From sequence record ON529853.1: a stretch of DNA of 64,000 bases. One strand, 5' to 3'. Under the pieces are notes generated by a model. The model saw only the letters and a program-made list of their open reading frames with translations. It had not been told where the DNA came from and did not search any database. The translations under genes were made by a program, and so were the position numbers. Positions 2,937 through 37,077 of this stretch are shown piece by piece (within the stretch, counting starts at the first letter, position 1; each line of letters starts with the position of its first letter).

Positions 2937-3115
2937 TGGTCGTCTCCTCTTTCGATACAGACCACTATAGAGGCGATTCGTTAACAAGGGGTTAACGCCG
3001 GGACGATTTTTCAGGCAGCGCGGGCGGGCGTTAACCTTAACAGCCCGTTAACCTTAACGACCGGTTAACGGCCCCGTTAACCATGGCGGGGTCGCCGCCA
3101 TGGCCGGGGGTCCGG

Positions 3116-3376
3116 TCAGGCCGCCGGGGGCGGCGGGGGCGGCGGGATCGGGTGGGCGCGGGCGAGGGTCTTGGCGGTCCACGCGTCCGGGGTCGAGAGG
3201 TCGTAGGCCTCGGCGAACAGGCGGGCGCAGTCCTGCACCGTCTCGCCCTTCAGGTGGTCTTCATACCAGCTACGCAGTTGGTCTTCATCAGCGCCCGCGT
3301 CGCGGTAGTCGATGCCGTAGCCCGCCAGCAGGGCGGCGTTGGCGGCGGCGAGCCAGAGTTCAAACGTGGGATACAT
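3116..3376 (-). CDS. hypothetical protein
   Basis: RBS and CtrA box 3423. Confidence 0.75.
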   Translation of the reverse strand: MYPTFELWLAAANAALLAGYGIDYRDAGADEDQLRSWYEDHLKGETVQDCARLFAEAYDLSTPDAWTAKTLARAHPIPPPPPPPAA

Positions 3377-24857: not shown

Positions 24858-25306
24858 GAGTCACGAAATCCATCCACGGGCCGGAAAACCAGGCCCTGCG
24901 GGCGATCGTCAGTCACGATACCTATGAACGATGACTCTGCCTGGATTTTTGTCAGTCACGAAACCCGGAGGCGGGCTTCGCCGGCGATCCTGGCGCCCAG
25001 GCGGATCAGTGTCAGCGGTTGTGTCAATGCGGGACACAATAAGGCGGGATTAGGGCGAAATGGGATTTCAGGGCGGAGTCACGTTCCCCGGAATCGGGGC
25101 TCGGGGCTTCTGTTGATTTCATTGAGGTTTTTCTGGAAATCGCCGCGAAACGGAGTCACGAAGTCCGTTGTGCAGTGCAGCATTGCGGGCGTTTCGGCCG
25201 GGTCCAGACGGGGCGAAACGGAGTCACGTTTTCCTAAGCCGTTGGGATCATTACGCTTTTCCGACAGGGTCAGCACCTGAGTCACGTTTGACACGAACGA
25301 TGACTC
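24858..25306. repeat. Repeat family B, right copy: (G)AGTCACG half-sites and dyads
   Basis: 24858, 24911(+24929), 24954, 25076, 25153, 25221, 25279(+25298). Confidence 0.85.
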
Positions 25307-25322
25307 CGGCATCAGAGGCCCG

Positions 25323-25408
25323 AAAACAGGCAAAATCACTGTAAAATCAGGTATTTAGGGGTGTTTTTCGGGGATTTTAGGCGAATTCAGCGCCGTTTTC
25401 GGTGAAAA
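25323..25408. other. Second phased A/T-tract segment
   Basis: Tracts near 25323,25332,25343,25353,25364,25374,25384,25396,25405. Confidence 0.7.
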
Positions 25409-25569
25409 CGGGCCACAGACTCGCTGGGAAGGTCTTGCCGCCCCGCTGAACGCCCGGCACGCTGCCGATGACGCCGCTTCCGCTCCCAGGGCGAGGGGCG
25501 GATGATCTGGACCGCCCAGAAGAGCAGCAGAAGGAAGACCAGGCCGCCCATCACGATCGCTATCGCCAT
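25387..25569 (-). CDS. 60-aa membrane-anchored basic peptide (MAIAIVMGGLVFLLLLFWAV...)
   Basis: GGAGAG RBS; TM helix plus Arg-rich tail. Confidence 0.5.
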   Translation of the reverse strand: MAIAIVMGGLVFLLLLFWAVQIIRPSPWERKRRHRQRAGRSAGRQDLPSESVARFHRKRR

Positions 25570-26110: not shown

Positions 26111-26140
26111 AAGAAAAAGGCCGGTGCAGGGCACCGACCT
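26111..26140 (-). terminator. Rho-independent terminator after terL
   Basis: AGGTCGGTGC-CCT-GCACCGGCCT followed by TTTTCTTT on minus strand. Confidence 0.8.
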
Positions 26141-26168
26141 CTTTCGAGTCAGACGGGAAGGGGCCGGA

Positions 26169-28892
26169 TCAGCCGAACGAGCCGATCTTGCGGGAGCCGA
26201 AGCGGGTCCGGGAGCCCTTCATCCACTGGAGGGCCTGGGTCATGGCGTCCACTTGGTCATCGTGTGCGCCTTCGGGGAACTGCCCGACTTCCTTGGTGAA
26301 GGCGTCCATCCACTCGGCCTTCTTGGGCAGGAAGACGTCGCCGGCGGTGATCAGCGGGCTGACCTCGTCGAAGCGGAATTCCTTGGACTGGCCCTTGGGG
26401 TCGATGCCGACGATGGGGGCCGGGGCCAGGCGGCGGTGGCTGGTGGTCTGCCCCCGGTTCTGGATGTAGGCGGTGCCCTGGCCCTTGTCTTCGACCAGGA
26501 TCACATCGACGCCGTCCTTGACCGCCTGCTGCTCGATCATCTCGATCATGGCGTCGAACTCGACCTTCTTGCGGGTCTGGCGCAGCAGGTAATACTGACG
26601 GTCGTTGGTCTCGCCCCAGGTCTGCACGACCGTGTAGTCGGCCCGCTGGTTGACCTTGGCGGCGCAGTCGACCGACAGGACGATGCGGCGGAAGTGGGCG
26701 CGCTTGTTCGGGATCGCCTTGCCGTGCTCATCGACATGGCCCTCGGCGCGCTGCTTCTTCAGCGCCTCTTCGGTCAGGTGCGGGGGCCGCTCGTAATACT
26801 GGAAGCGGCCGGCGATCGAGTCGTCGGAGGTCGCGGTGGCGTTCTGCTGGTAGACCAGGGCGAAACGCTGGTAGGACCATTCGGTCTTCTTCGTCTTGAA
26901 GAACGACAGGTCGTAATAGTCCCACAACACGTCGCCCAGCTTGCGCCCGAGCACGTCGGTGTCCTCGTCGATGCACAGGGCCGGGGCCTCGACCTGGGTC
27001 CACTGGGCGTAGGCCGGCAGACGCGGGTTCATCTCCATCAGGTGGCCCGTCAGGTCGTGCTCGTGGAAGCGCGTCATGATCAGGAACATCTTGCCGAAGG
27101 GCAGCATCCGCGAACCGATGTCGCCGACGAACCAGGTGTTGACCTTCTCGCGGGCGGCGGCCGATTCCGCCTCCTCGATCTTGGCGTAGGGGTCATCGAC
27201 GCAGGCGAAGTTGGCGCGGAAGCCGTGAACGGCCTGCCCGGTGCCCTTGGCGACATACTGCCCGCCGTAGCCGGCGATGGCCCATTGGTCGGCGGCGCGC
27301 GTGGCGTAGTCGACCACCACCTCGGGGAAGACGCGACGGAACTCCTGACCGCCGACCAGGGAGCGAATCTTCTTGGAGAACTCGTTCTCGACGAAGCGCT
27401 GGCTGTGGCCGCCGCCGATGATCTTCAGCTTGGGATTGCGCCCCAGGCGCCAGGCGACGAACAGGCGCGAGGCGTAGGTCGAGTTGTGCACCACCACGCC
27501 GTCGGCGGTGAAGGTGTGATCGCCGAACACGGTCAGGCAGCGGCACTCGCCGACGCCGGCGGCCTCGACCATCGCCACCTTGTCCGTCACCTTCGAGCCG
27601 TAGGGCAGGCGCTTGGCGATGAAGTCCGGCTCGTGGCGGCCGTGGAAACTGATCCCGGCGTCGAGCAGACGTTCGATCGCCGGCCCGCGCACCACCAGGG
27701 CCGCGCGGCGGTTCGCCTGCGGATGCTCGACCACGGCGTCGACGTCGTAACGGGCCAGCAGCTTTTGCAGGTCCTGGGCGAAGTCAGCCGACTTGATCCA
27801 GGCGATCAGGGTGGCCTGGCTGTATTTCTTCGGCGTCTCGCCGCGCAGGCGGAAGTAGGTCGTCAGGAAGTGCTTGATCTTCTCGTCGTCGCCCCGGAAC
27901 ACGAACTCGGGCACGCGGCGCTCGCCGGCGCGCTTGGTCATACCGAGTAGTTCCTGGTATGGCCGGGTCGTTTTCGAGCGCAGCCGGATCAGGTGGCGCT
28001 TGTTCGCCGGCACCCAGCGACGGGCGTAGCGGATGCCCAGGGCGTCCAGCACCCGCTCGGCCTCCTCGACATGGGCCAGGGAGGAGAACCACATCTGGAG
28101 GTTCTGGTAGGGGGTGCCGTTCGGCGCGGTCGCGTCGGTGTAGGAGCCGAAGGCGGCGATGAAGGCGGCGAGGGCGAAGACGTCCTTGGGCTGACCGGAC
28201 GTGTCCTCGGGTTTTTCCGGGGTATGGCTGGTCATACCGACCACGCTCAGGTTCATGCGCGGGCGCAGGTTCTGGGCTTCGATCCAGTCACCGTCGACCA
28301 GGAAGGGGTGGTCCGGGGCCGACCAGATCGTGCGGCCCTTCTCGGTCGTGATCTTCAGCAGCGGCAGTTCGCCCTGAACGTGGACCGCCTCGACCTTGCG
28401 GCGGCGGCCGGCGTGGGTGACGACCTCTTCGCCGACCTCGATCTCGCCCAGGGGCTTGTAGGCGCCCGAGCCCATCAGCACCGGGGTCGAGACGTGCAGC
28501 GGCTTGGCGTGACCGGGCGGGCAGTTCAGGATGAAGCGATCCAGTTCAGGATCGTTCTCGATCTTCTGGAGCAGTTCGGTCAGGTAGATGTGCCACTTGG
28601 ATTCCGGCGGCTCATCCGGCGAGACGTATTCGCAGAAGGCGTTGAAGTCGTCGCGCGCCAGCGGCAGCAGCCGCTCCAGGTGGCGCTTTTGCAGTTCGTC
28701 GCCCAGGCCCATCAGGGCGTCGATCTGCTGATTGACCTCCTGGACGCCGGTGATCTTGATGATCCCCTGGCGGGTGTTCTCGGGCAGGATCAGACCGCGT
28801 TCGGCGGCGCGCTTGGCTTCGGCGGCGAGGCTGTGGAGTTGCTTGGTGGCCTGCCGCGCCTTGATGCGGTCGGCGATGATGTAGTCAGACAT
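26169..28892 (-). CDS. terL: Terminase large subunit with intein
   Basis: Walker A PPGHAK|S split by insertion; Walker B FACVDDPY; FLIMTRFHEHD; nuclease SVDCA...ADY and HDDQVDAMTQ. Confidence 0.95.
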   Translation of the reverse strand: MSDYIIADRIKARQATKQLHSLAAEAKRAAERGLILPENTRQGIIKITGVQEVNQQIDALMGLGDELQKRHLERLLPLARDDFNAFCEYVSPDEPPESKWHIYLTELLQKIENDPELDRFILNCPPGHAKPLHVSTPVLMGSGAYKPLGEIEVGEEVVTHAGRRRKVEAVHVQGELPLLKITTEKGRTIWSAPDHPFLVDGDWIEAQNLRPRMNLSVVGMTSHTPEKPEDTSGQPKDVFALAAFIAAFGSYTDATAPNGTPYQNLQMWFSSLAHVEEAERVLDALGIRYARRWVPANKRHLIRLRSKTTRPYQELLGMTKRAGERRVPEFVFRGDDEKIKHFLTTYFRLRGETPKKYSQATLIAWIKSADFAQDLQKLLARYDVDAVVEHPQANRRAALVVRGPAIERLLDAGISFHGRHEPDFIAKRLPYGSKVTDKVAMVEAAGVGECRCLTVFGDHTFTADGVVVHNSTYASRLFVAWRLGRNPKLKIIGGGHSQRFVENEFSKKIRSLVGGQEFRRVFPEVVVDYATRAADQWAIAGYGGQYVAKGTGQAVHGFRANFACVDDPYAKIEEAESAAAREKVNTWFVGDIGSRMLPFGKMFLIMTRFHEHDLTGHLMEMNPRLPAYAQWTQVEAPALCIDEDTDVLGRKLGDVLWDYYDLSFFKTKKTEWSYQRFALVYQQNATATSDDSIAGRFQYYERPPHLTEEALKKQRAEGHVDEHGKAIPNKRAHFRRIVLSVDCAAKVNQRADYTVVQTWGETNDRQYYLLRQTRKKVEFDAMIEMIEQQAVKDGVDVILVEDKGQGTAYIQNRGQTTSHRRLAPAPIVGIDPKGQSKEFRFDEVSPLITAGDVFLPKKAEWMDAFTKEVGQFPEGAHDDQVDAMTQALQWMKGSRTRFGSRKIGSFG
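27483..28502 (-). mobile_element. 340-aa intein, Pro-initiated (class 3-like), with degenerate LAGLIDADG domain
   Basis: Starts PLHVSTPV; block B SAPDHPFLVDGDW; block F ECRCLTV; ends VVHN followed by Ser. Confidence 0.9.
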
Positions 28893-28896
28893 GCTG

Positions 28897-29133
28897 TCAG
28901 TAGGTCTCGTGGGTGTCGAGCGCTACGGCCGCCAGCAGGTCGTCGACGTGAAAGATGAGGTCCGCATCGCCGCGTTGGCGCGTCAGGTGACGAATGGTGC
29001 GGAGGGTGTTTTCCAGCCGCAGGATGCGGCGGCGAAGGCGCGAGGCGCGGAGCATCAGCCCCGCCACCCCGATCAGGTAGACCGCGCTCAGGGCGAGCAT
29101 CGTCCACAGGAACGACGGCGGCAGGTCAGGCAT
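28897..29133 (-). CDS. small membrane protein
   Basis: N-terminal TM helix; TGATG coupling with terS. Confidence 0.65.
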   Translation of the reverse strand: MPDLPPSFLWTMLALSAVYLIGVAGLMLRASRLRRRILRLENTLRTIRHLTRQRGDADLIFHVDDLLAAVALDTHETY

Positions 29134-34655: not shown

Positions 34656-34684
34656 ATAAATAGCCTCTATGAATCGCCGTCATG

Positions 34685-34710
34685 TTAACCATGCTGACAT
34701 TCAATGTCAA
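34685..34710 (-). promoter_or_regulatory. sigma70-like promoter overlapped by palindrome TGACAT-TCA-ATGTCA and a TTAACCAT CtrA half-site
   Basis: TTGACA at 34705-34710 (minus); palindrome 34695-34709; TTAACCAT 34685-34692. Confidence 0.6.
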
Positions 34711-34782
34711 GATTATGGGATATAAATAATGTCGCGTAATGGAAAAATAGGCGAAATCCGCCAGACCACCGCCCGAAACGAC

Positions 34783-34830
34783 ATCACTCGTGCGCTTCGC
34801 GCCCTCGTGCCTGCCTCCGGCAGCCCTCCT
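34783..34830 (+). repeat. Twin-hairpin element, copy A
   Basis: ATCACTCGT-GCGC-TTC-GCGC...CTGCC-TCC-GGCAG. Confidence 0.8.
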
Positions 34831-35130
34831 TCGGAACTCCCTGCGGTCGCTACTGCGTGAACCTGTTTCGGTCCAGACCAGACAAGGCCTGGCACGGCTG
34901 GATCGGTTGGATCGGTTGGATTGGTCCCTGCGGGCTCATTCGGTCAAGGCCTGGCACGGCTGGATCGGTTGCTGCGGGCTGTTTCGCTTAAGGATTGGCA
35001 CGGCTGGATCGGCTCTCCGGTCAACACCAGGCATAGCTGGATCGCTGCAACGTCTGGTCGGCTCCACAGCTTCACAGCATGACAACCTTCGGACCTCCAC
35101 GACGGGACGGCCGAACCGAGTCCAGGGCTT

Positions 35131-35180
35131 CCGGAGGACGGCTGGCGAAGCCAGTCACGAGGGGGCGAAGCCCACGAGTG
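35131..35180 (-). repeat. Twin-hairpin element, copy B (inverted)
   Basis: CACTCGT-GGGC-TTC-GCCC...CTGGC-TTC-GCCAG on minus strand. Confidence 0.8.
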
Positions 35181-35450
35181 GAGCACTGTCATTTTTCACG
35201 GCGGTGGTTGACAGCACCACCGGCAGTCCGTAGACAACCTGGGCCGGGAGCGTTCTGCTCAGTCCGTGACCGGCTCTGGAAGAGAAGAGCGGCCGGCCCC
35301 TCCCGTACGAGGATGCTGGTCGCTCCGATCTCGCGGGATCAGGCTTTCCTGAACTTTCCTGAAATGTATCCCAACATTCCGAAGGGGTCCCGCAGGACCA
35401 CCGCCGTGTAGAATGCAGGACCACCGCCCGCATAATGCGCCAGGTCGAGC

Positions 35451-35548
35451 ATCACTCCTGCGCTTCGCGCCGTCGTGCCCGGCTCCGCCGGCCGCACCTC
35501 CGGTCGCCCTATAGGATAAGGCCCGGCACTCGAACGCAGGTCGAGCCG
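35451..35548 (+). repeat. Twin-hairpin element, copy C
   Basis: About 100 bp near-identical to copy D. Confidence 0.85.
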
Positions 35549-35712
35549 GCCGCAACGTCAACACGGTGCCCGACAAGGCTCGGCACAGCCGTGTGATTGC
35601 TTGGACTTTCCTGAAATCTATCCCAAAAAATCGCAACAGCCTTCACGGTCAAACCAATTTTCAACCGACTCGGGCTCACGCCGGCCTTGTCCTGGAGGGG
35701 CCTAGTCGGCCC

Positions 35713-36000
35713 TCAGCGGGCCTCTGGGATCAGCGGGACGCCGTTCAGGACCGCGTCGAACTGTTCGATCAGGTCGTAGGTGGATTTCATCTCGCCGTCG
35801 ATCTCGACCTCGTCCAGGTTCCAGTCCGTGGCGATGCTGGCGAGTTGCCGGGCGACCCGGACCGCTTCGAGCGCGGCGAGCAGGCGCTGATAGTCGGGGT
35901 CTTCCAGGATCAGGTCCTGGTCGTCCGGGTGGACGCCGATCAGGCGGGTGCGGATATAGCTGGCGAGGATGTCGGCTTGGGTCGGGGGTGCTGAGGTCAT
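35713..36000 (-). CDS. hypothetical protein
   Basis: ORF with typical codon usage. Confidence 0.65.
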   Translation of the reverse strand: MTSAPPTQADILASYIRTRLIGVHPDDQDLILEDPDYQRLLAALEAVRVARQLASIATDWNLDEVEIDGEMKSTYDLIEQFDAVLNGVPLIPEAR

Positions 36001-36019
36001 GCCTTTATGTGTCAGGCAT

Positions 36020-36190
36020 CTTGACCGGGGTCAAGGGGATCGCCGCCCGCCCCGGTGCAACGGAGCGGGCGCGCAGCCTGGTCAAACAGCAAACCCCAGG
36101 CGGGCGCACCACAGGGGCGCCTCGATCTCGCGCTCACCGAAGAGCGCCACGTCCGCCGCAGTAGGAACGAGAACCTGCGCGAACGGACCT
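36020..36190 (-). ncRNA. candidate sRNA 3
   Basis: TTGACC-N17-CAATGT promoter (36221-36193); shares hairpin with sRNA 1. Confidence 0.35.
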
Positions 36191-36296
36191 GGACATTGCC
36201 GTCGATCCTGACAAAGGTCAAGGAAAATCCCCGCATGTCCACAGGCGCGTCGCCCAGGCCGGTCAAGGAAAATGCCGCCCTGCGGTGGTCCGGCCA

Positions 36297-36421
36297 GCAA
36301 AAACCCGCCGGCGAGGGACCGGCGGGTTCGGGCTCTGTTCAGGAAGCCGCGCTCGTGAAGAGCGCCACAGCCGCCTTGCCGGGGAGGTACTGAAAGGAGT
36401 CGACGGTCCCGGCGCGACTGG
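36297..36421 (-). ncRNA. candidate sRNA 1 (~120 nt) with anti-SD-like CUCCUUU/CCUCCCC motifs
   Basis: TTGACA-N17-CATACA promoter (36456-36428), terminator 36297-36329, no ORF. Confidence 0.5.
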
Positions 36422-36466
36422 ACCTTCTGTATGCCGGGGCTGGCAGTGTGTGTCAATGGGGCTGAC

Positions 36467-36562
36467 ACGAAAAGACCCGCCGGCGAACCGACGGGTCTGG
36501 ATCGATCAAGATGCTTTATCTCGAAAGCCGGAGCCCCGGACGGCACAGGATACGCGTGCCTT
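36467..36562 (-). ncRNA. candidate sRNA 2 (~95 nt)
   Basis: TTGACA-N17-CATAAG promoter (36597-36569), terminator ~36467-36500. Confidence 0.45.
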
Positions 36563-36639
36563 GTTCCCCTTATGGGGCGAACCGTGCTGGGTGTCAAGAA
36601 TCCAGGCAGCCGAGATTCCTCCCGAGGGCGGGCGCCGGG

Positions 36640-37077
36640 TCAAGAGACGGGGCGGACGGCGGTCGCGTAGTTGTCGAACGCGTCGATTCGGATGCAGAAG
36701 GAGACGATGTCCCCCGGCTTGAACCGGTTGTCCGCCTCTGCGATCCAGGCGTCCCCGTCGACAGGTCCTGTGCGGCGCACGTAGAGGCGTCCCGAGGGGT
36801 GGGTGCGTACGATCCCCCTGTAGCGGTTGTTCCTCAGCTTACGGACATCAACCGCGTGGTCGGTGCCGTCCTCGGTGACCTGGAGATCGAACGCCACGCG
36901 CTCGCCCCGATACAGAGGCGCGCAGCCGGAGCGGAATGCGGCGTCCGTGAGCATGGGGACGCGGCGGTCCCCAGCGGTGGTGTCCGTGATGATGCTATAG
37001 GCGCCATCGCGTAGGTCGAGGTAACCGTCTCTGACGTATTCCTTGCGAAAAGCGTACTCTGCGGGTGTTTCGCTCAT
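36640..37077 (-). CDS. protein with two divergent cold-shock-like OB folds
   Basis: GERVAFDLQVTEDGTDHAVDVRKL and GDIVSFCIRIDAFDNYATAVRPV. Confidence 0.55.
   Translation of the reverse strand: MSETPAEYAFRKEYVRDGYLDLRDGAYSIITDTTAGDRRVPMLTDAAFRSGCAPLYRGERVAFDLQVTEDGTDHAVDVRKLRNNRYRGIVRTHPSGRLYVRRTGPVDGDAWIAEADNRFKPGDIVSFCIRIDAFDNYATAVRPVS

Follow-up and report, generated by a model that had tools for sequence, protein, structure and literature searches.

The stretch of DNA analyzed here, referred to as the window, comprises bases 1–64,000 of the 348,100-bp genome of Brevundimonas phage vB_BpoS-Bambus (ON529853.1; Dolichocephalovirinae), whose host is B. pondensis LVF1. Between BAMBUS_00570 and BAMBUS_00560, two minus-strand genes inside a long run of genes on that strand, lies a gap of 639 bp (36001–36639) that is gene-free in the GenBank annotation, and the paper describing these phages makes no mention of non-coding RNAs or promoters. 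The minus strand of this gap carries three units, u1, u2 and u3 (Table 1). The feature is real and, as predicted here, holds two well-supported candidate small-RNA genes, u1 and u2, together with a paralogue of u2, u3, that appears to have been converted into a leader of BAMBUS_00560. Over this region phage Marchewka is 100% identical to Bambus, Papperlapapp is 83% identical with the full query covered, and Kabachok and Domovoi are 82–83% identical with 69% of the query covered.

Table 1. Features of the gap and its two flanking genes, in order of minus-strand transcription (positions are those of the window)
Feature	Positions	Strand	Sequence elements or basis
BAMBUS_00570, upstream gene	36640–37077	−	Annotation and sequence
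P1, promoter-like site of u1	36569–36597	−	TTGACA 36597–36592, 17-nt spacer, CATAAG 36574–36569
u1, predicted small RNA, ∼95 nt	36468–36565	−	Three hairpins and intrinsic terminator
P2, promoter-like site of u2	36428–36456	−	TTGACA 36456–36451, 17-nt spacer, CATACA 36433–36428; AGGUCC after 2 nt
u2, predicted small RNA, ∼125 nt	36297–36424	−	Long 5′ stem-loop, hairpin 2, hairpin 3, terminator
Tandem repeat, ∼45 bp, carrying ATTTTCCTTGACC twice	36216–36281	−	Sequence and repeat search
P3, promoter-like site of u3	36193–36221	−	TTGACC 36221–36216, 17-nt spacer, CAATGT 36198–36193; AGGUCC after 2 nt
u3, u2 paralogue and predicted BAMBUS_00560 5′ leader, ∼190 nt	36001–36190	−	Alignment to u2, folds
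P4, proximal promoter-like site of BAMBUS_00560	36006–36034	−	TTGACC 36034–36029; CACATA 36011–36006; kept in four phages
BAMBUS_00560, 95-aa protein downstream of the cluster	35713–36000	−	Annotation

Candidate small-RNA genes u1 and u2

An earlier prediction for this region (the original prediction) had proposed a cluster of three candidate small RNAs in a stretch devoid of credible open reading frames (ORFs), and the coding statistics bear out the latter claim. Real genes have a GC content of 0.81–0.93 at third codon positions (GC3) and of 0.39–0.53 at second codon positions (GC2), and the ORFs of the gap all show a flat profile, among them one of 171 codons that runs across it (GC3 0.63). 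Every gap ORF is broken in the relatives by indels (of 19, 7 and 1 nt), such that none carries the phage coding signature and none survives in the related genomes. As for the RNAs themselves, u1 and u2 look like free-standing, structured and conserved units, whereas the third has no working terminator and would enter BAMBUS_00560.

The RNA predicted for u1 folds with a free energy of −41.6 kcal/mol (z-score −3.1) and ends at a terminator whose stem (36498–36473) is followed by UUUU (−21.0 kcal/mol, z −5.2). Across Papperlapapp, Kabachok and Domovoi the column identity is ∼91%, and RNAalifold identifies substitutions that retain pairing: one pair of hairpin 1 is G-C in Bambus, G·U in Kabachok and A-U in Papperlapapp and Domovoi, and a terminator pair switches between A-U and G-C. 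The u1 model, R3, scores 108–148 bits in Bambus, Papperlapapp and Kabachok. Just ahead of the terminator is an invariant stretch of 19 nt, AGCAUCUUGAUCGAUCCAG, which is the sole functional lead for u1.

The u2 RNA begins with a long 5′-terminal stem whose apical loop of 25 nt is pyrimidine-rich and contains CUCCUUU and CCUCCCC. Both motifs had been noted in the original prediction and are indeed present, but the RNA that carries them starts from the second promoter (36456) and not from the first. The stem-loop is followed by hairpin 2 (GCGCUC-UUCAC-GAGCGC, 36365–36349), by hairpin 3, whose loop is CCUGAACA, and by a terminator at ∼36329–36299 with a 12-bp stem (∼36329–36304) and five U (−22.8 kcal/mol, z −4.8); the complete fold reaches −62.6 kcal/mol (z −2.9). 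Column identity with Papperlapapp, Kabachok and Domovoi is, as for u1, ∼91%. A C-G pair of hairpin 2 switches to U-A in close relatives, and three one-arm substitutions in the 5′ stem of Kabachok u2 all keep their pairing. The terminators that had been placed within 95–125 nt of the first two promoters are thus both found, with the energies given above and runs of four to five U.

Both units have the generic make-up of small-RNA genes. Each has its own promoter and a Rho-independent terminator, 50–300 nt apart in a gene-free gap, each is without a conserved reading frame, and in each the structure is kept with compensatory changes, albeit among few sequences. The G·U pairs and U tracts make sense only on the minus strand. 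In a strict scan of the 348-kb Bambus genome, u1 and u2 are two of only three orphan promoter-to-terminator units. The third lies outside the window at genome positions 285381–285577 (−) and has the arrangement TTGACA-N17-TAAATG, a 31-codon ORF starting 7 nt past the −10 box and a 15-bp terminator.

Elements of u1 recur elsewhere. A near-identical copy of its terminator hairpin (27 nt, 96%) is found at Bambus genome positions 79989–80097 (−), outside the window, where the u1 model scores 34 bits; this is possibly a further small unit with the same terminator module. Papperlapapp (extracted locus 2205–2365) and the same stretch of Domovoi have an extra small unit between u1 and u2, composed of CTGGACA-N17-TAGACT, a 9-codon ORF (MYREGFPWG) preceded by GGAGG, a hairpin and a duplicated u1 terminator. 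Since the terminator of this unit is a duplicate, the cluster would appear to grow through duplication at terminators.

Unit u3, the predicted leader of BAMBUS_00560, and the promoters

The third unit is collinear with u2: the promoter, AGGUCC, the 5′ stem, the GCGCUC hairpin and a GCGC(U/C)CCUG block follow in the same order, down to the ...GGGUUUGCUG end. In u3 the 5′ stem-loop precedes the hairpin GCGCUC-UUCGGU-GAGCGC (36147–36130). The composite pattern GGCGG-NN-GTGGCGCTCTTC-N2–4-GAGCGC occurs exactly twice in the 64 kb (36375–36349 and 36157–36130) against 0.00 expected occurrences, and the model of the shared 5′ domain (R1) detects only u2 and u3 in each Bambus-type genome. The original prediction had recognized a motif common to its first and third RNAs. 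It is found twice, as stated, but the RNA with its first hairpin is read from the second promoter (36456), and the likeness is not limited to one hairpin, as had been thought, but extends from the promoter to the position of the terminator.

The two paralogues differ at that position. In the alignment to u2, an 8-nt deletion has taken out the 5′ arm of the u3 terminator, and the remnant (36117–36083) folds at −15.6 kcal/mol (z −0.9), no better than shuffled sequences, compared to −22.8 kcal/mol for the u2 terminator. Because this arm is deleted, the transcript would run ∼190 nt on to the ATG of BAMBUS_00560, passing P4 and a very strong GC hairpin (36075–36041, −27.9 kcal/mol). The u3 leader has four one-sided changes, all of which still pair as G·U. 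It is on the same strand as BAMBUS_00560, has no terminator before the start codon, is non-coding and is conserved, as befits a leader through which transcription would presumably pass. By these features u3 would be a paralogue of u2 that has become a leader and, if it is a small RNA at all, then a leaky one.

The leader has been annotated as protein in two relatives. KABACHOK_00150 (extracted locus 2952–3146) and DOMOVOI_00730 (3149–3343) have coding sequences (CDS) extended by 65 codons, with an ATG that lies inside the P3 −10 box. The extension has a GC3 of 0.71–0.74 and substitution counts of 2/3/4 at the three codon positions versus 9/10/24 in the true CDS, and in Bambus it has four frameshifting indels and the CDS has none. 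Both CDS are therefore probably 65 codons too long, the extension being the conserved u3 leader, and the cluster in this way corrects the annotated starts of the two genes.

The promoter-like sites are themselves conserved. For P1, the −35 box and most of the −10 box are invariant in four phages, and for P3, which is collinear with P2, 39 nt are invariant across the four. The −35 box of P3 is provided by the downstream copy of the ∼45-bp ATTTTCCTTGACC repeat, of which there is one copy in Kabachok and about two in Bambus, Papperlapapp and Domovoi. The P4 −35 box is inside a perfect palindrome, TTGACC-CC-GGTCAA, a possible operator, and since only 6 nt separate the end of the P4 −10 box from the ATG at 36000, the BAMBUS_00560 mRNA is probably leaderless. 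A GANTC (CcrM methylation) site, GATTC (36602–36598, −), abuts the P1 −35 box and is kept in all four phages.

In Caulobacter the RpoD consensus is TTGaCgS / GCtANAWC, and a strong −35 box alone can create promoters (PMC8144410). P1–P3 fit this pattern, with a strong −35 box and a −10 box that has A2/A4 (PMC8144410). Sites of the form TTGAC[ACG]-N16–18-YAnA number 58 in the phage genome versus 14 in shuffles (maximum 23), a ∼4-fold enrichment, and in the window TTGAC[AC] is ∼3.7-fold enriched in intergenic DNA. We consider the units to be probably transcribed.

Distant members of the u2 family and known small RNAs

The u2 covariance model, R2, detects further copies in phages Kikimora (25261–25425, E 2e-4 per genome) and Gurke (26126–26290, E 3.5e-4 per genome), to neither of which BLASTN finds any similarity of the query. 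Both copies start with TTGACA-N17-CATTGT-2 nt-AGGUCC, end in a terminator and are located in an unannotated gap of 1 kb, whose neighbouring genes differ from those in Bambus. The geometry of the 5′ stem is unchanged in these copies and its pairs are swapped (C-G to U-A, G-C to C-G and G-C to U-A). Across six sequences, pairing is seen in 95% of cells and double changes in 18 of 39 pairs, compared to 6.6 ± 1.9 in shuffles and 1–4 in slid controls, in an alignment that was fitted to the model, which inflates pairing, only 4–6 distinct sequences being available overall. We consider the covariation support for the u2 family to be good but not conclusive.

Kikimora has a second copy at ∼28838–28991, with its own promoter and terminator, which is antisense to the two plus-strand genes on either side of its 208-nt gap and for that reason cannot be a gene leader. 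Downstream of the first Kikimora copy (extracted locus 1230–1500, −) is a promoter-terminator unit of ∼110 nt with TTGACG-N17-CATACT, after which come a promoter and a hydrophobic ORF of 31 codons (MRTLSRFLTAFAIFLALFIGVGLPILLSVSS). Models R1 and R2 gave no matches on phiCbK and Bajun. Two R2 matches in CcrColossus (26 and 25 bits) were rejected as homologues, since it was mainly the terminator that aligned and the large apical loop of the 5′ hairpin was absent. Exact-pattern scans of IMG/VR, metagenome contigs and GTDB genomes returned no relatives; three viral matches to the patterns lie inside coding sequence and were dismissed as chance. On this evidence the predicted RNAs form a new small-RNA family that spans two clusters of giant Brevundimonas phages; small RNAs of phages are as such an already known kind.

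The Rfam comparison that had been suggested for the small RNAs assigned them to no family. At gathering thresholds the whole window has no Rfam match, and searches by E-value of 2.6 kb, of a 61-nt stretch and of the Kikimora loci gave only sub-threshold noise. The best match of u2 is to alpha-r14 (RF02344), at 36296–36420 (−) with 20.0 bits and E 0.7, far from the gathering threshold of 58.8, and RF02344 has no match on the Kikimora copies. For u1, a parallel can be drawn with 3′-untranslated-region small RNAs that have their own promoter, such as MicL and DapZ in enterobacteria. Like these, u1 directly follows a stop codon, that of BAMBUS_00570, and would share its terminator with any read-through mRNA; unlike these, its promoter is past the stop codon and not within the coding sequence.

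The alpha-r14 or 'cuckoo' RNAs (NfeR1, CcsR1–4) have two to four adjacent hairpins with CCUCCUCCC in each loop (PMC4615179). The u2 family resembles them in its alphaproteobacterial setting, in having small-RNA genes in a row with an intrinsic terminator, in the pyrimidine-rich, anti-Shine–Dalgarno-like motifs of a hairpin loop and in covarying stems with drifting sequence. In contrast, u2 has one pyrimidine-rich loop only, with CUCC or CCUCC in place of CCUCCUCCC, which is in none of the u2-family copies; its hairpin 2 loop is UUCAC, and the family is phage-borne, with one member that has no such motif. The u2 family is thus not a member of alpha-r14 and at most works like it. Among very large virulent phages, four non-coding RNAs are described for the giant Pseudomonas phage PA5oct (PMC7318152) and transcripts have been mapped in further giant Pseudomonas phages (PMC8244752, PMC10914365), so that short non-coding transcription units have a precedent there. 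Those RNAs come from RNA sequencing and, as far as these accounts describe them, have no sequence or structure relation to the units presented here, which are predicted from sequence only and include paralogous copies, one duplicate of which would now be a gene leader.

Proposed function and alternative explanations

We propose that the gap is a tandem array of phage small non-coding RNA genes on the minus strand that are read by the host RNA polymerase, and assign this reading a probability of about 0.6. In this model, u1 and u2 would be self-contained, each combining a strong −35 promoter with a structured RNA and a strong intrinsic terminator. The scaffold of the u2 family would be fixed, with AGGUCC at the 5′ end as part of a long stem, then a short GC hairpin whose loop is of the UUCA or UUCG type, a linker and a terminator, and its large apical loop would be variable and usually pyrimidine-rich. 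Unit u3 would have arisen as a tandem duplicate of u2 that suffered the 8-nt deletion of its terminator 5′ arm, and its transcript would continue as a structured leader into BAMBUS_00560, which also has the proximal P4. The sequence data show the anatomy of the array, its conservation and covariation, the paralogy of u2 and u3 and the lack of a coding signal, but that the RNAs are made and act in trans is something we only infer.

For u2, the most likely mode of action would be pairing of the exposed pyrimidine-rich loop with purine-rich ribosome-binding sites on phage or host mRNAs, and occlusion of these sites is our preferred mechanism, at roughly one chance in four. In the u2 family the 5′-terminal stem is 13–17 bp and the loop 25–28 nt, with a pyrimidine content of 59–72% in five of six copies. 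ACUCCU is kept in the apical loop of all four close phages, and Kikimora and Gurke have ACCUCC twice in the same loop. These CU-rich motifs resemble what we take to be the anti-Shine–Dalgarno end of 16S rRNA. The first 50 kb of the window contain 80 annotated genes, and in 54 of these a GGAG, GAGG or AGGA core precedes the start codon, so potential targets would be plentiful and unspecific.

Several results weigh against the proposed array or against this mechanism. The CCUCCCC motif is not conserved, the closest relatives having CCCAUACCC instead, CUCC arises by chance in 23–44% of composition-matched loop shuffles, and the second Kikimora copy has a G/U-rich loop with no anti-Shine–Dalgarno motif. 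BLASTN-short searches of u1, u2 and u3 against the whole phage returned only GC-rich chance matches of 13–17 nt, and RNAduplex found no extended complementarity among the units and the neighbouring start regions (z −0.8 to +1.4). The idea, already part of the original prediction, that such RNAs silence GGAG ribosome-binding sites is therefore plausible but weak, with ACUCCU kept in four phages on the one hand and CCUCCCC replaced and CUCC near chance on the other. The three sigma70-like promoters of that prediction fare similarly: their −35 hexamers, 17-bp spacers and minus-strand orientation stand, but a scan with the E. coli consensus accepts none of P1–P3 due to their weak −10 boxes. The public runs that hold this DNA are wastewater contigs, with one Papperlapapp-like fragment spanning 36095–36274, and are silent on transcription, and the model-fitted pair counts described above count on the same side.

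A bolder and rather doubtful extension of the proposed mechanism would make the u2 family a 'scaffold' small RNA, in which a conserved frame presents a freely evolving targeting loop and duplication diversifies the regulators. Some loops would mimic the 3′ end of 16S rRNA (ACCUCC, CUCCUUUC) and shut off Shine–Dalgarno-led translation during takeover, others would target different sequences, and one copy would have been captured as a leader. If a pyrimidine-rich loop does block ribosome-binding sites, u2 would be a phage counterpart of the alpha-r14/cuckoo RNAs found in relatives of the hosts. RNA-based regulation is barely known in alphaproteobacterial phages or in these phages of 310–360 kb, of whose genes ∼85% are hypothetical, and a well-delimited cluster in a culturable phage–host pair offers concrete experimental targets.

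The u3 leader also invites a different explanation, in which u2 and u3 act in cis, as repeated leaders or attenuators, and their terminators let transcription pass into BAMBUS_00560 only under certain conditions, in a riboswitch-like or protein-dependent manner. In its favor, u3 is fused to the gene, its terminator remnant being followed by UUUGCUGUUUG, only ∼100 nt separate u2 from P3, which lies downstream and has the same orientation, and a single factor could recognize the 5′ domain that the two units have in common. However, the u2 terminator is strong, and inspection by eye, short of a systematic search for alternative structures, revealed no obvious antiterminator pairing that would compete with it; read-through from P2 is unnecessary given P3 and P4, the first Kikimora copy precedes another promoter-terminator unit and not a gene, and the second, antisense to its neighbours, has no downstream gene to control. 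We consider this explanation unlikely. We regard as quite improbable that the elements act at the level of DNA only, as promoters, operators and terminators that insulate operons or serve a nearby replication origin, with palindromes as protein-binding sites and transcripts as functionless by-products. The −35 boxes do lie within short palindromes (TTGACC-CC-GGTCAA at P4 and TGACA-N5-TGTCA at P2 in relatives), the GCGCTC-N5-GAGCGC hairpin is a DNA palindrome as well, and transcription of the upstream operon would likewise stop at the u1 terminator. Yet conserved G·U pairs or G·U intermediates would be mismatches on DNA or on the other strand, the long stems of the Bambus and Kikimora types covary as the sequence changes, which fits an RNA structure and not a fixed operator, and insulation has no need of two promoter-terminator pairs leading nowhere.

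Two further explanations concern what the transcripts themselves might be. RNA anti-CRISPRs, which mimic short palindromic repeats that are clustered and regularly interspaced (CRISPR), are located just downstream of a promoter, and the published finder accepts only sequences that match a CRISPR repeat, ideally one of the host, with an identity and a coverage of 90% or more (PMC10651486). Like these, u2 is a short hairpin RNA right after a phage promoter, and its 32-nt element GUG-GCGCUC-UUCAC-GAGCGC-GGCUUCCUGAAC (36368–36337), that is, hairpin 2 with its flank, is similar to a type I-C repeat in size and general shape and would soak up host Cas5/Cas7. It agrees with the published I-C repeats GTCGCGCCCTCACGGGCGCGTGGATTGAAAC (PMC9504256) and GTCGCGCCCCGTGCGGGCGCGTGGATTGAAAC (PMC5071653) in length, in having a GC stem of 6 bp and a loop of the UCAC type, and in its 3′ end, ...TGAA(A)C. 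By hand alignment, however, its identity to these two repeats is about two thirds, far under 90%. There is also no match to an Rfam CRISPR direct repeat, even in the 61-nt search, no plasmid array has the repeat, and when viral contigs were scanned for the hairpin, only isolated matches within coding sequence turned up, which we attribute to chance. Hairpin 2 differs markedly in Kikimora, a phage of the same host strain, and the u3 copy has no GAAC tail, all of which makes such a mimic very improbable. We give hardly any credence to the units being genes for short peptides. The 171-codon ORF, the Kabachok and Domovoi CDS that start inside the P3 −10 box, and the GGAGG with its 9-codon ORF in the extra Papperlapapp and Domovoi unit could be taken in that sense, but the composition, substitution and indel data given above for the spanning ORF and for the 65-codon extension speak against it. 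The array of small-RNA genes thus remains the reading that we prefer.

BAMBUS_00570 has no terminator of its own ahead of P1, so its read-through would stop at the u1 terminator, and a protein-anchored search with the flanking genes found no relatives of it. The same search found relatives of BAMBUS_00560 over its C-terminal half only, in unrelated viral contigs that lack the RNA units. BAMBUS_00560 has no Pfam or PHROG match, and Pfam and PHROGs searches of six neighbouring proteins returned nothing informative.

Beyond BAMBUS_00560, the adjoining 1-kb gap (34656–35712) is rich in direct and inverted repeats, such as a 27-nt unit present five times at 34883–35048 and 52-nt inverted arms at 34785 and 35129, and it has further TTGACC sites. 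A composite motif recurs upstream of minus-strand genes at window positions 325, 2213, 13153, 20482 (plus-strand TTGACC coordinates) and 23732. On the gene strand it reads GTTAAC-N5-GTTAA(C), CTAnnGTGG...GGTCAA and then an AAGGAG ribosome site, and it may represent a phage-specific class of promoter or operator that is distinct from the TTGAC-N17 sites.

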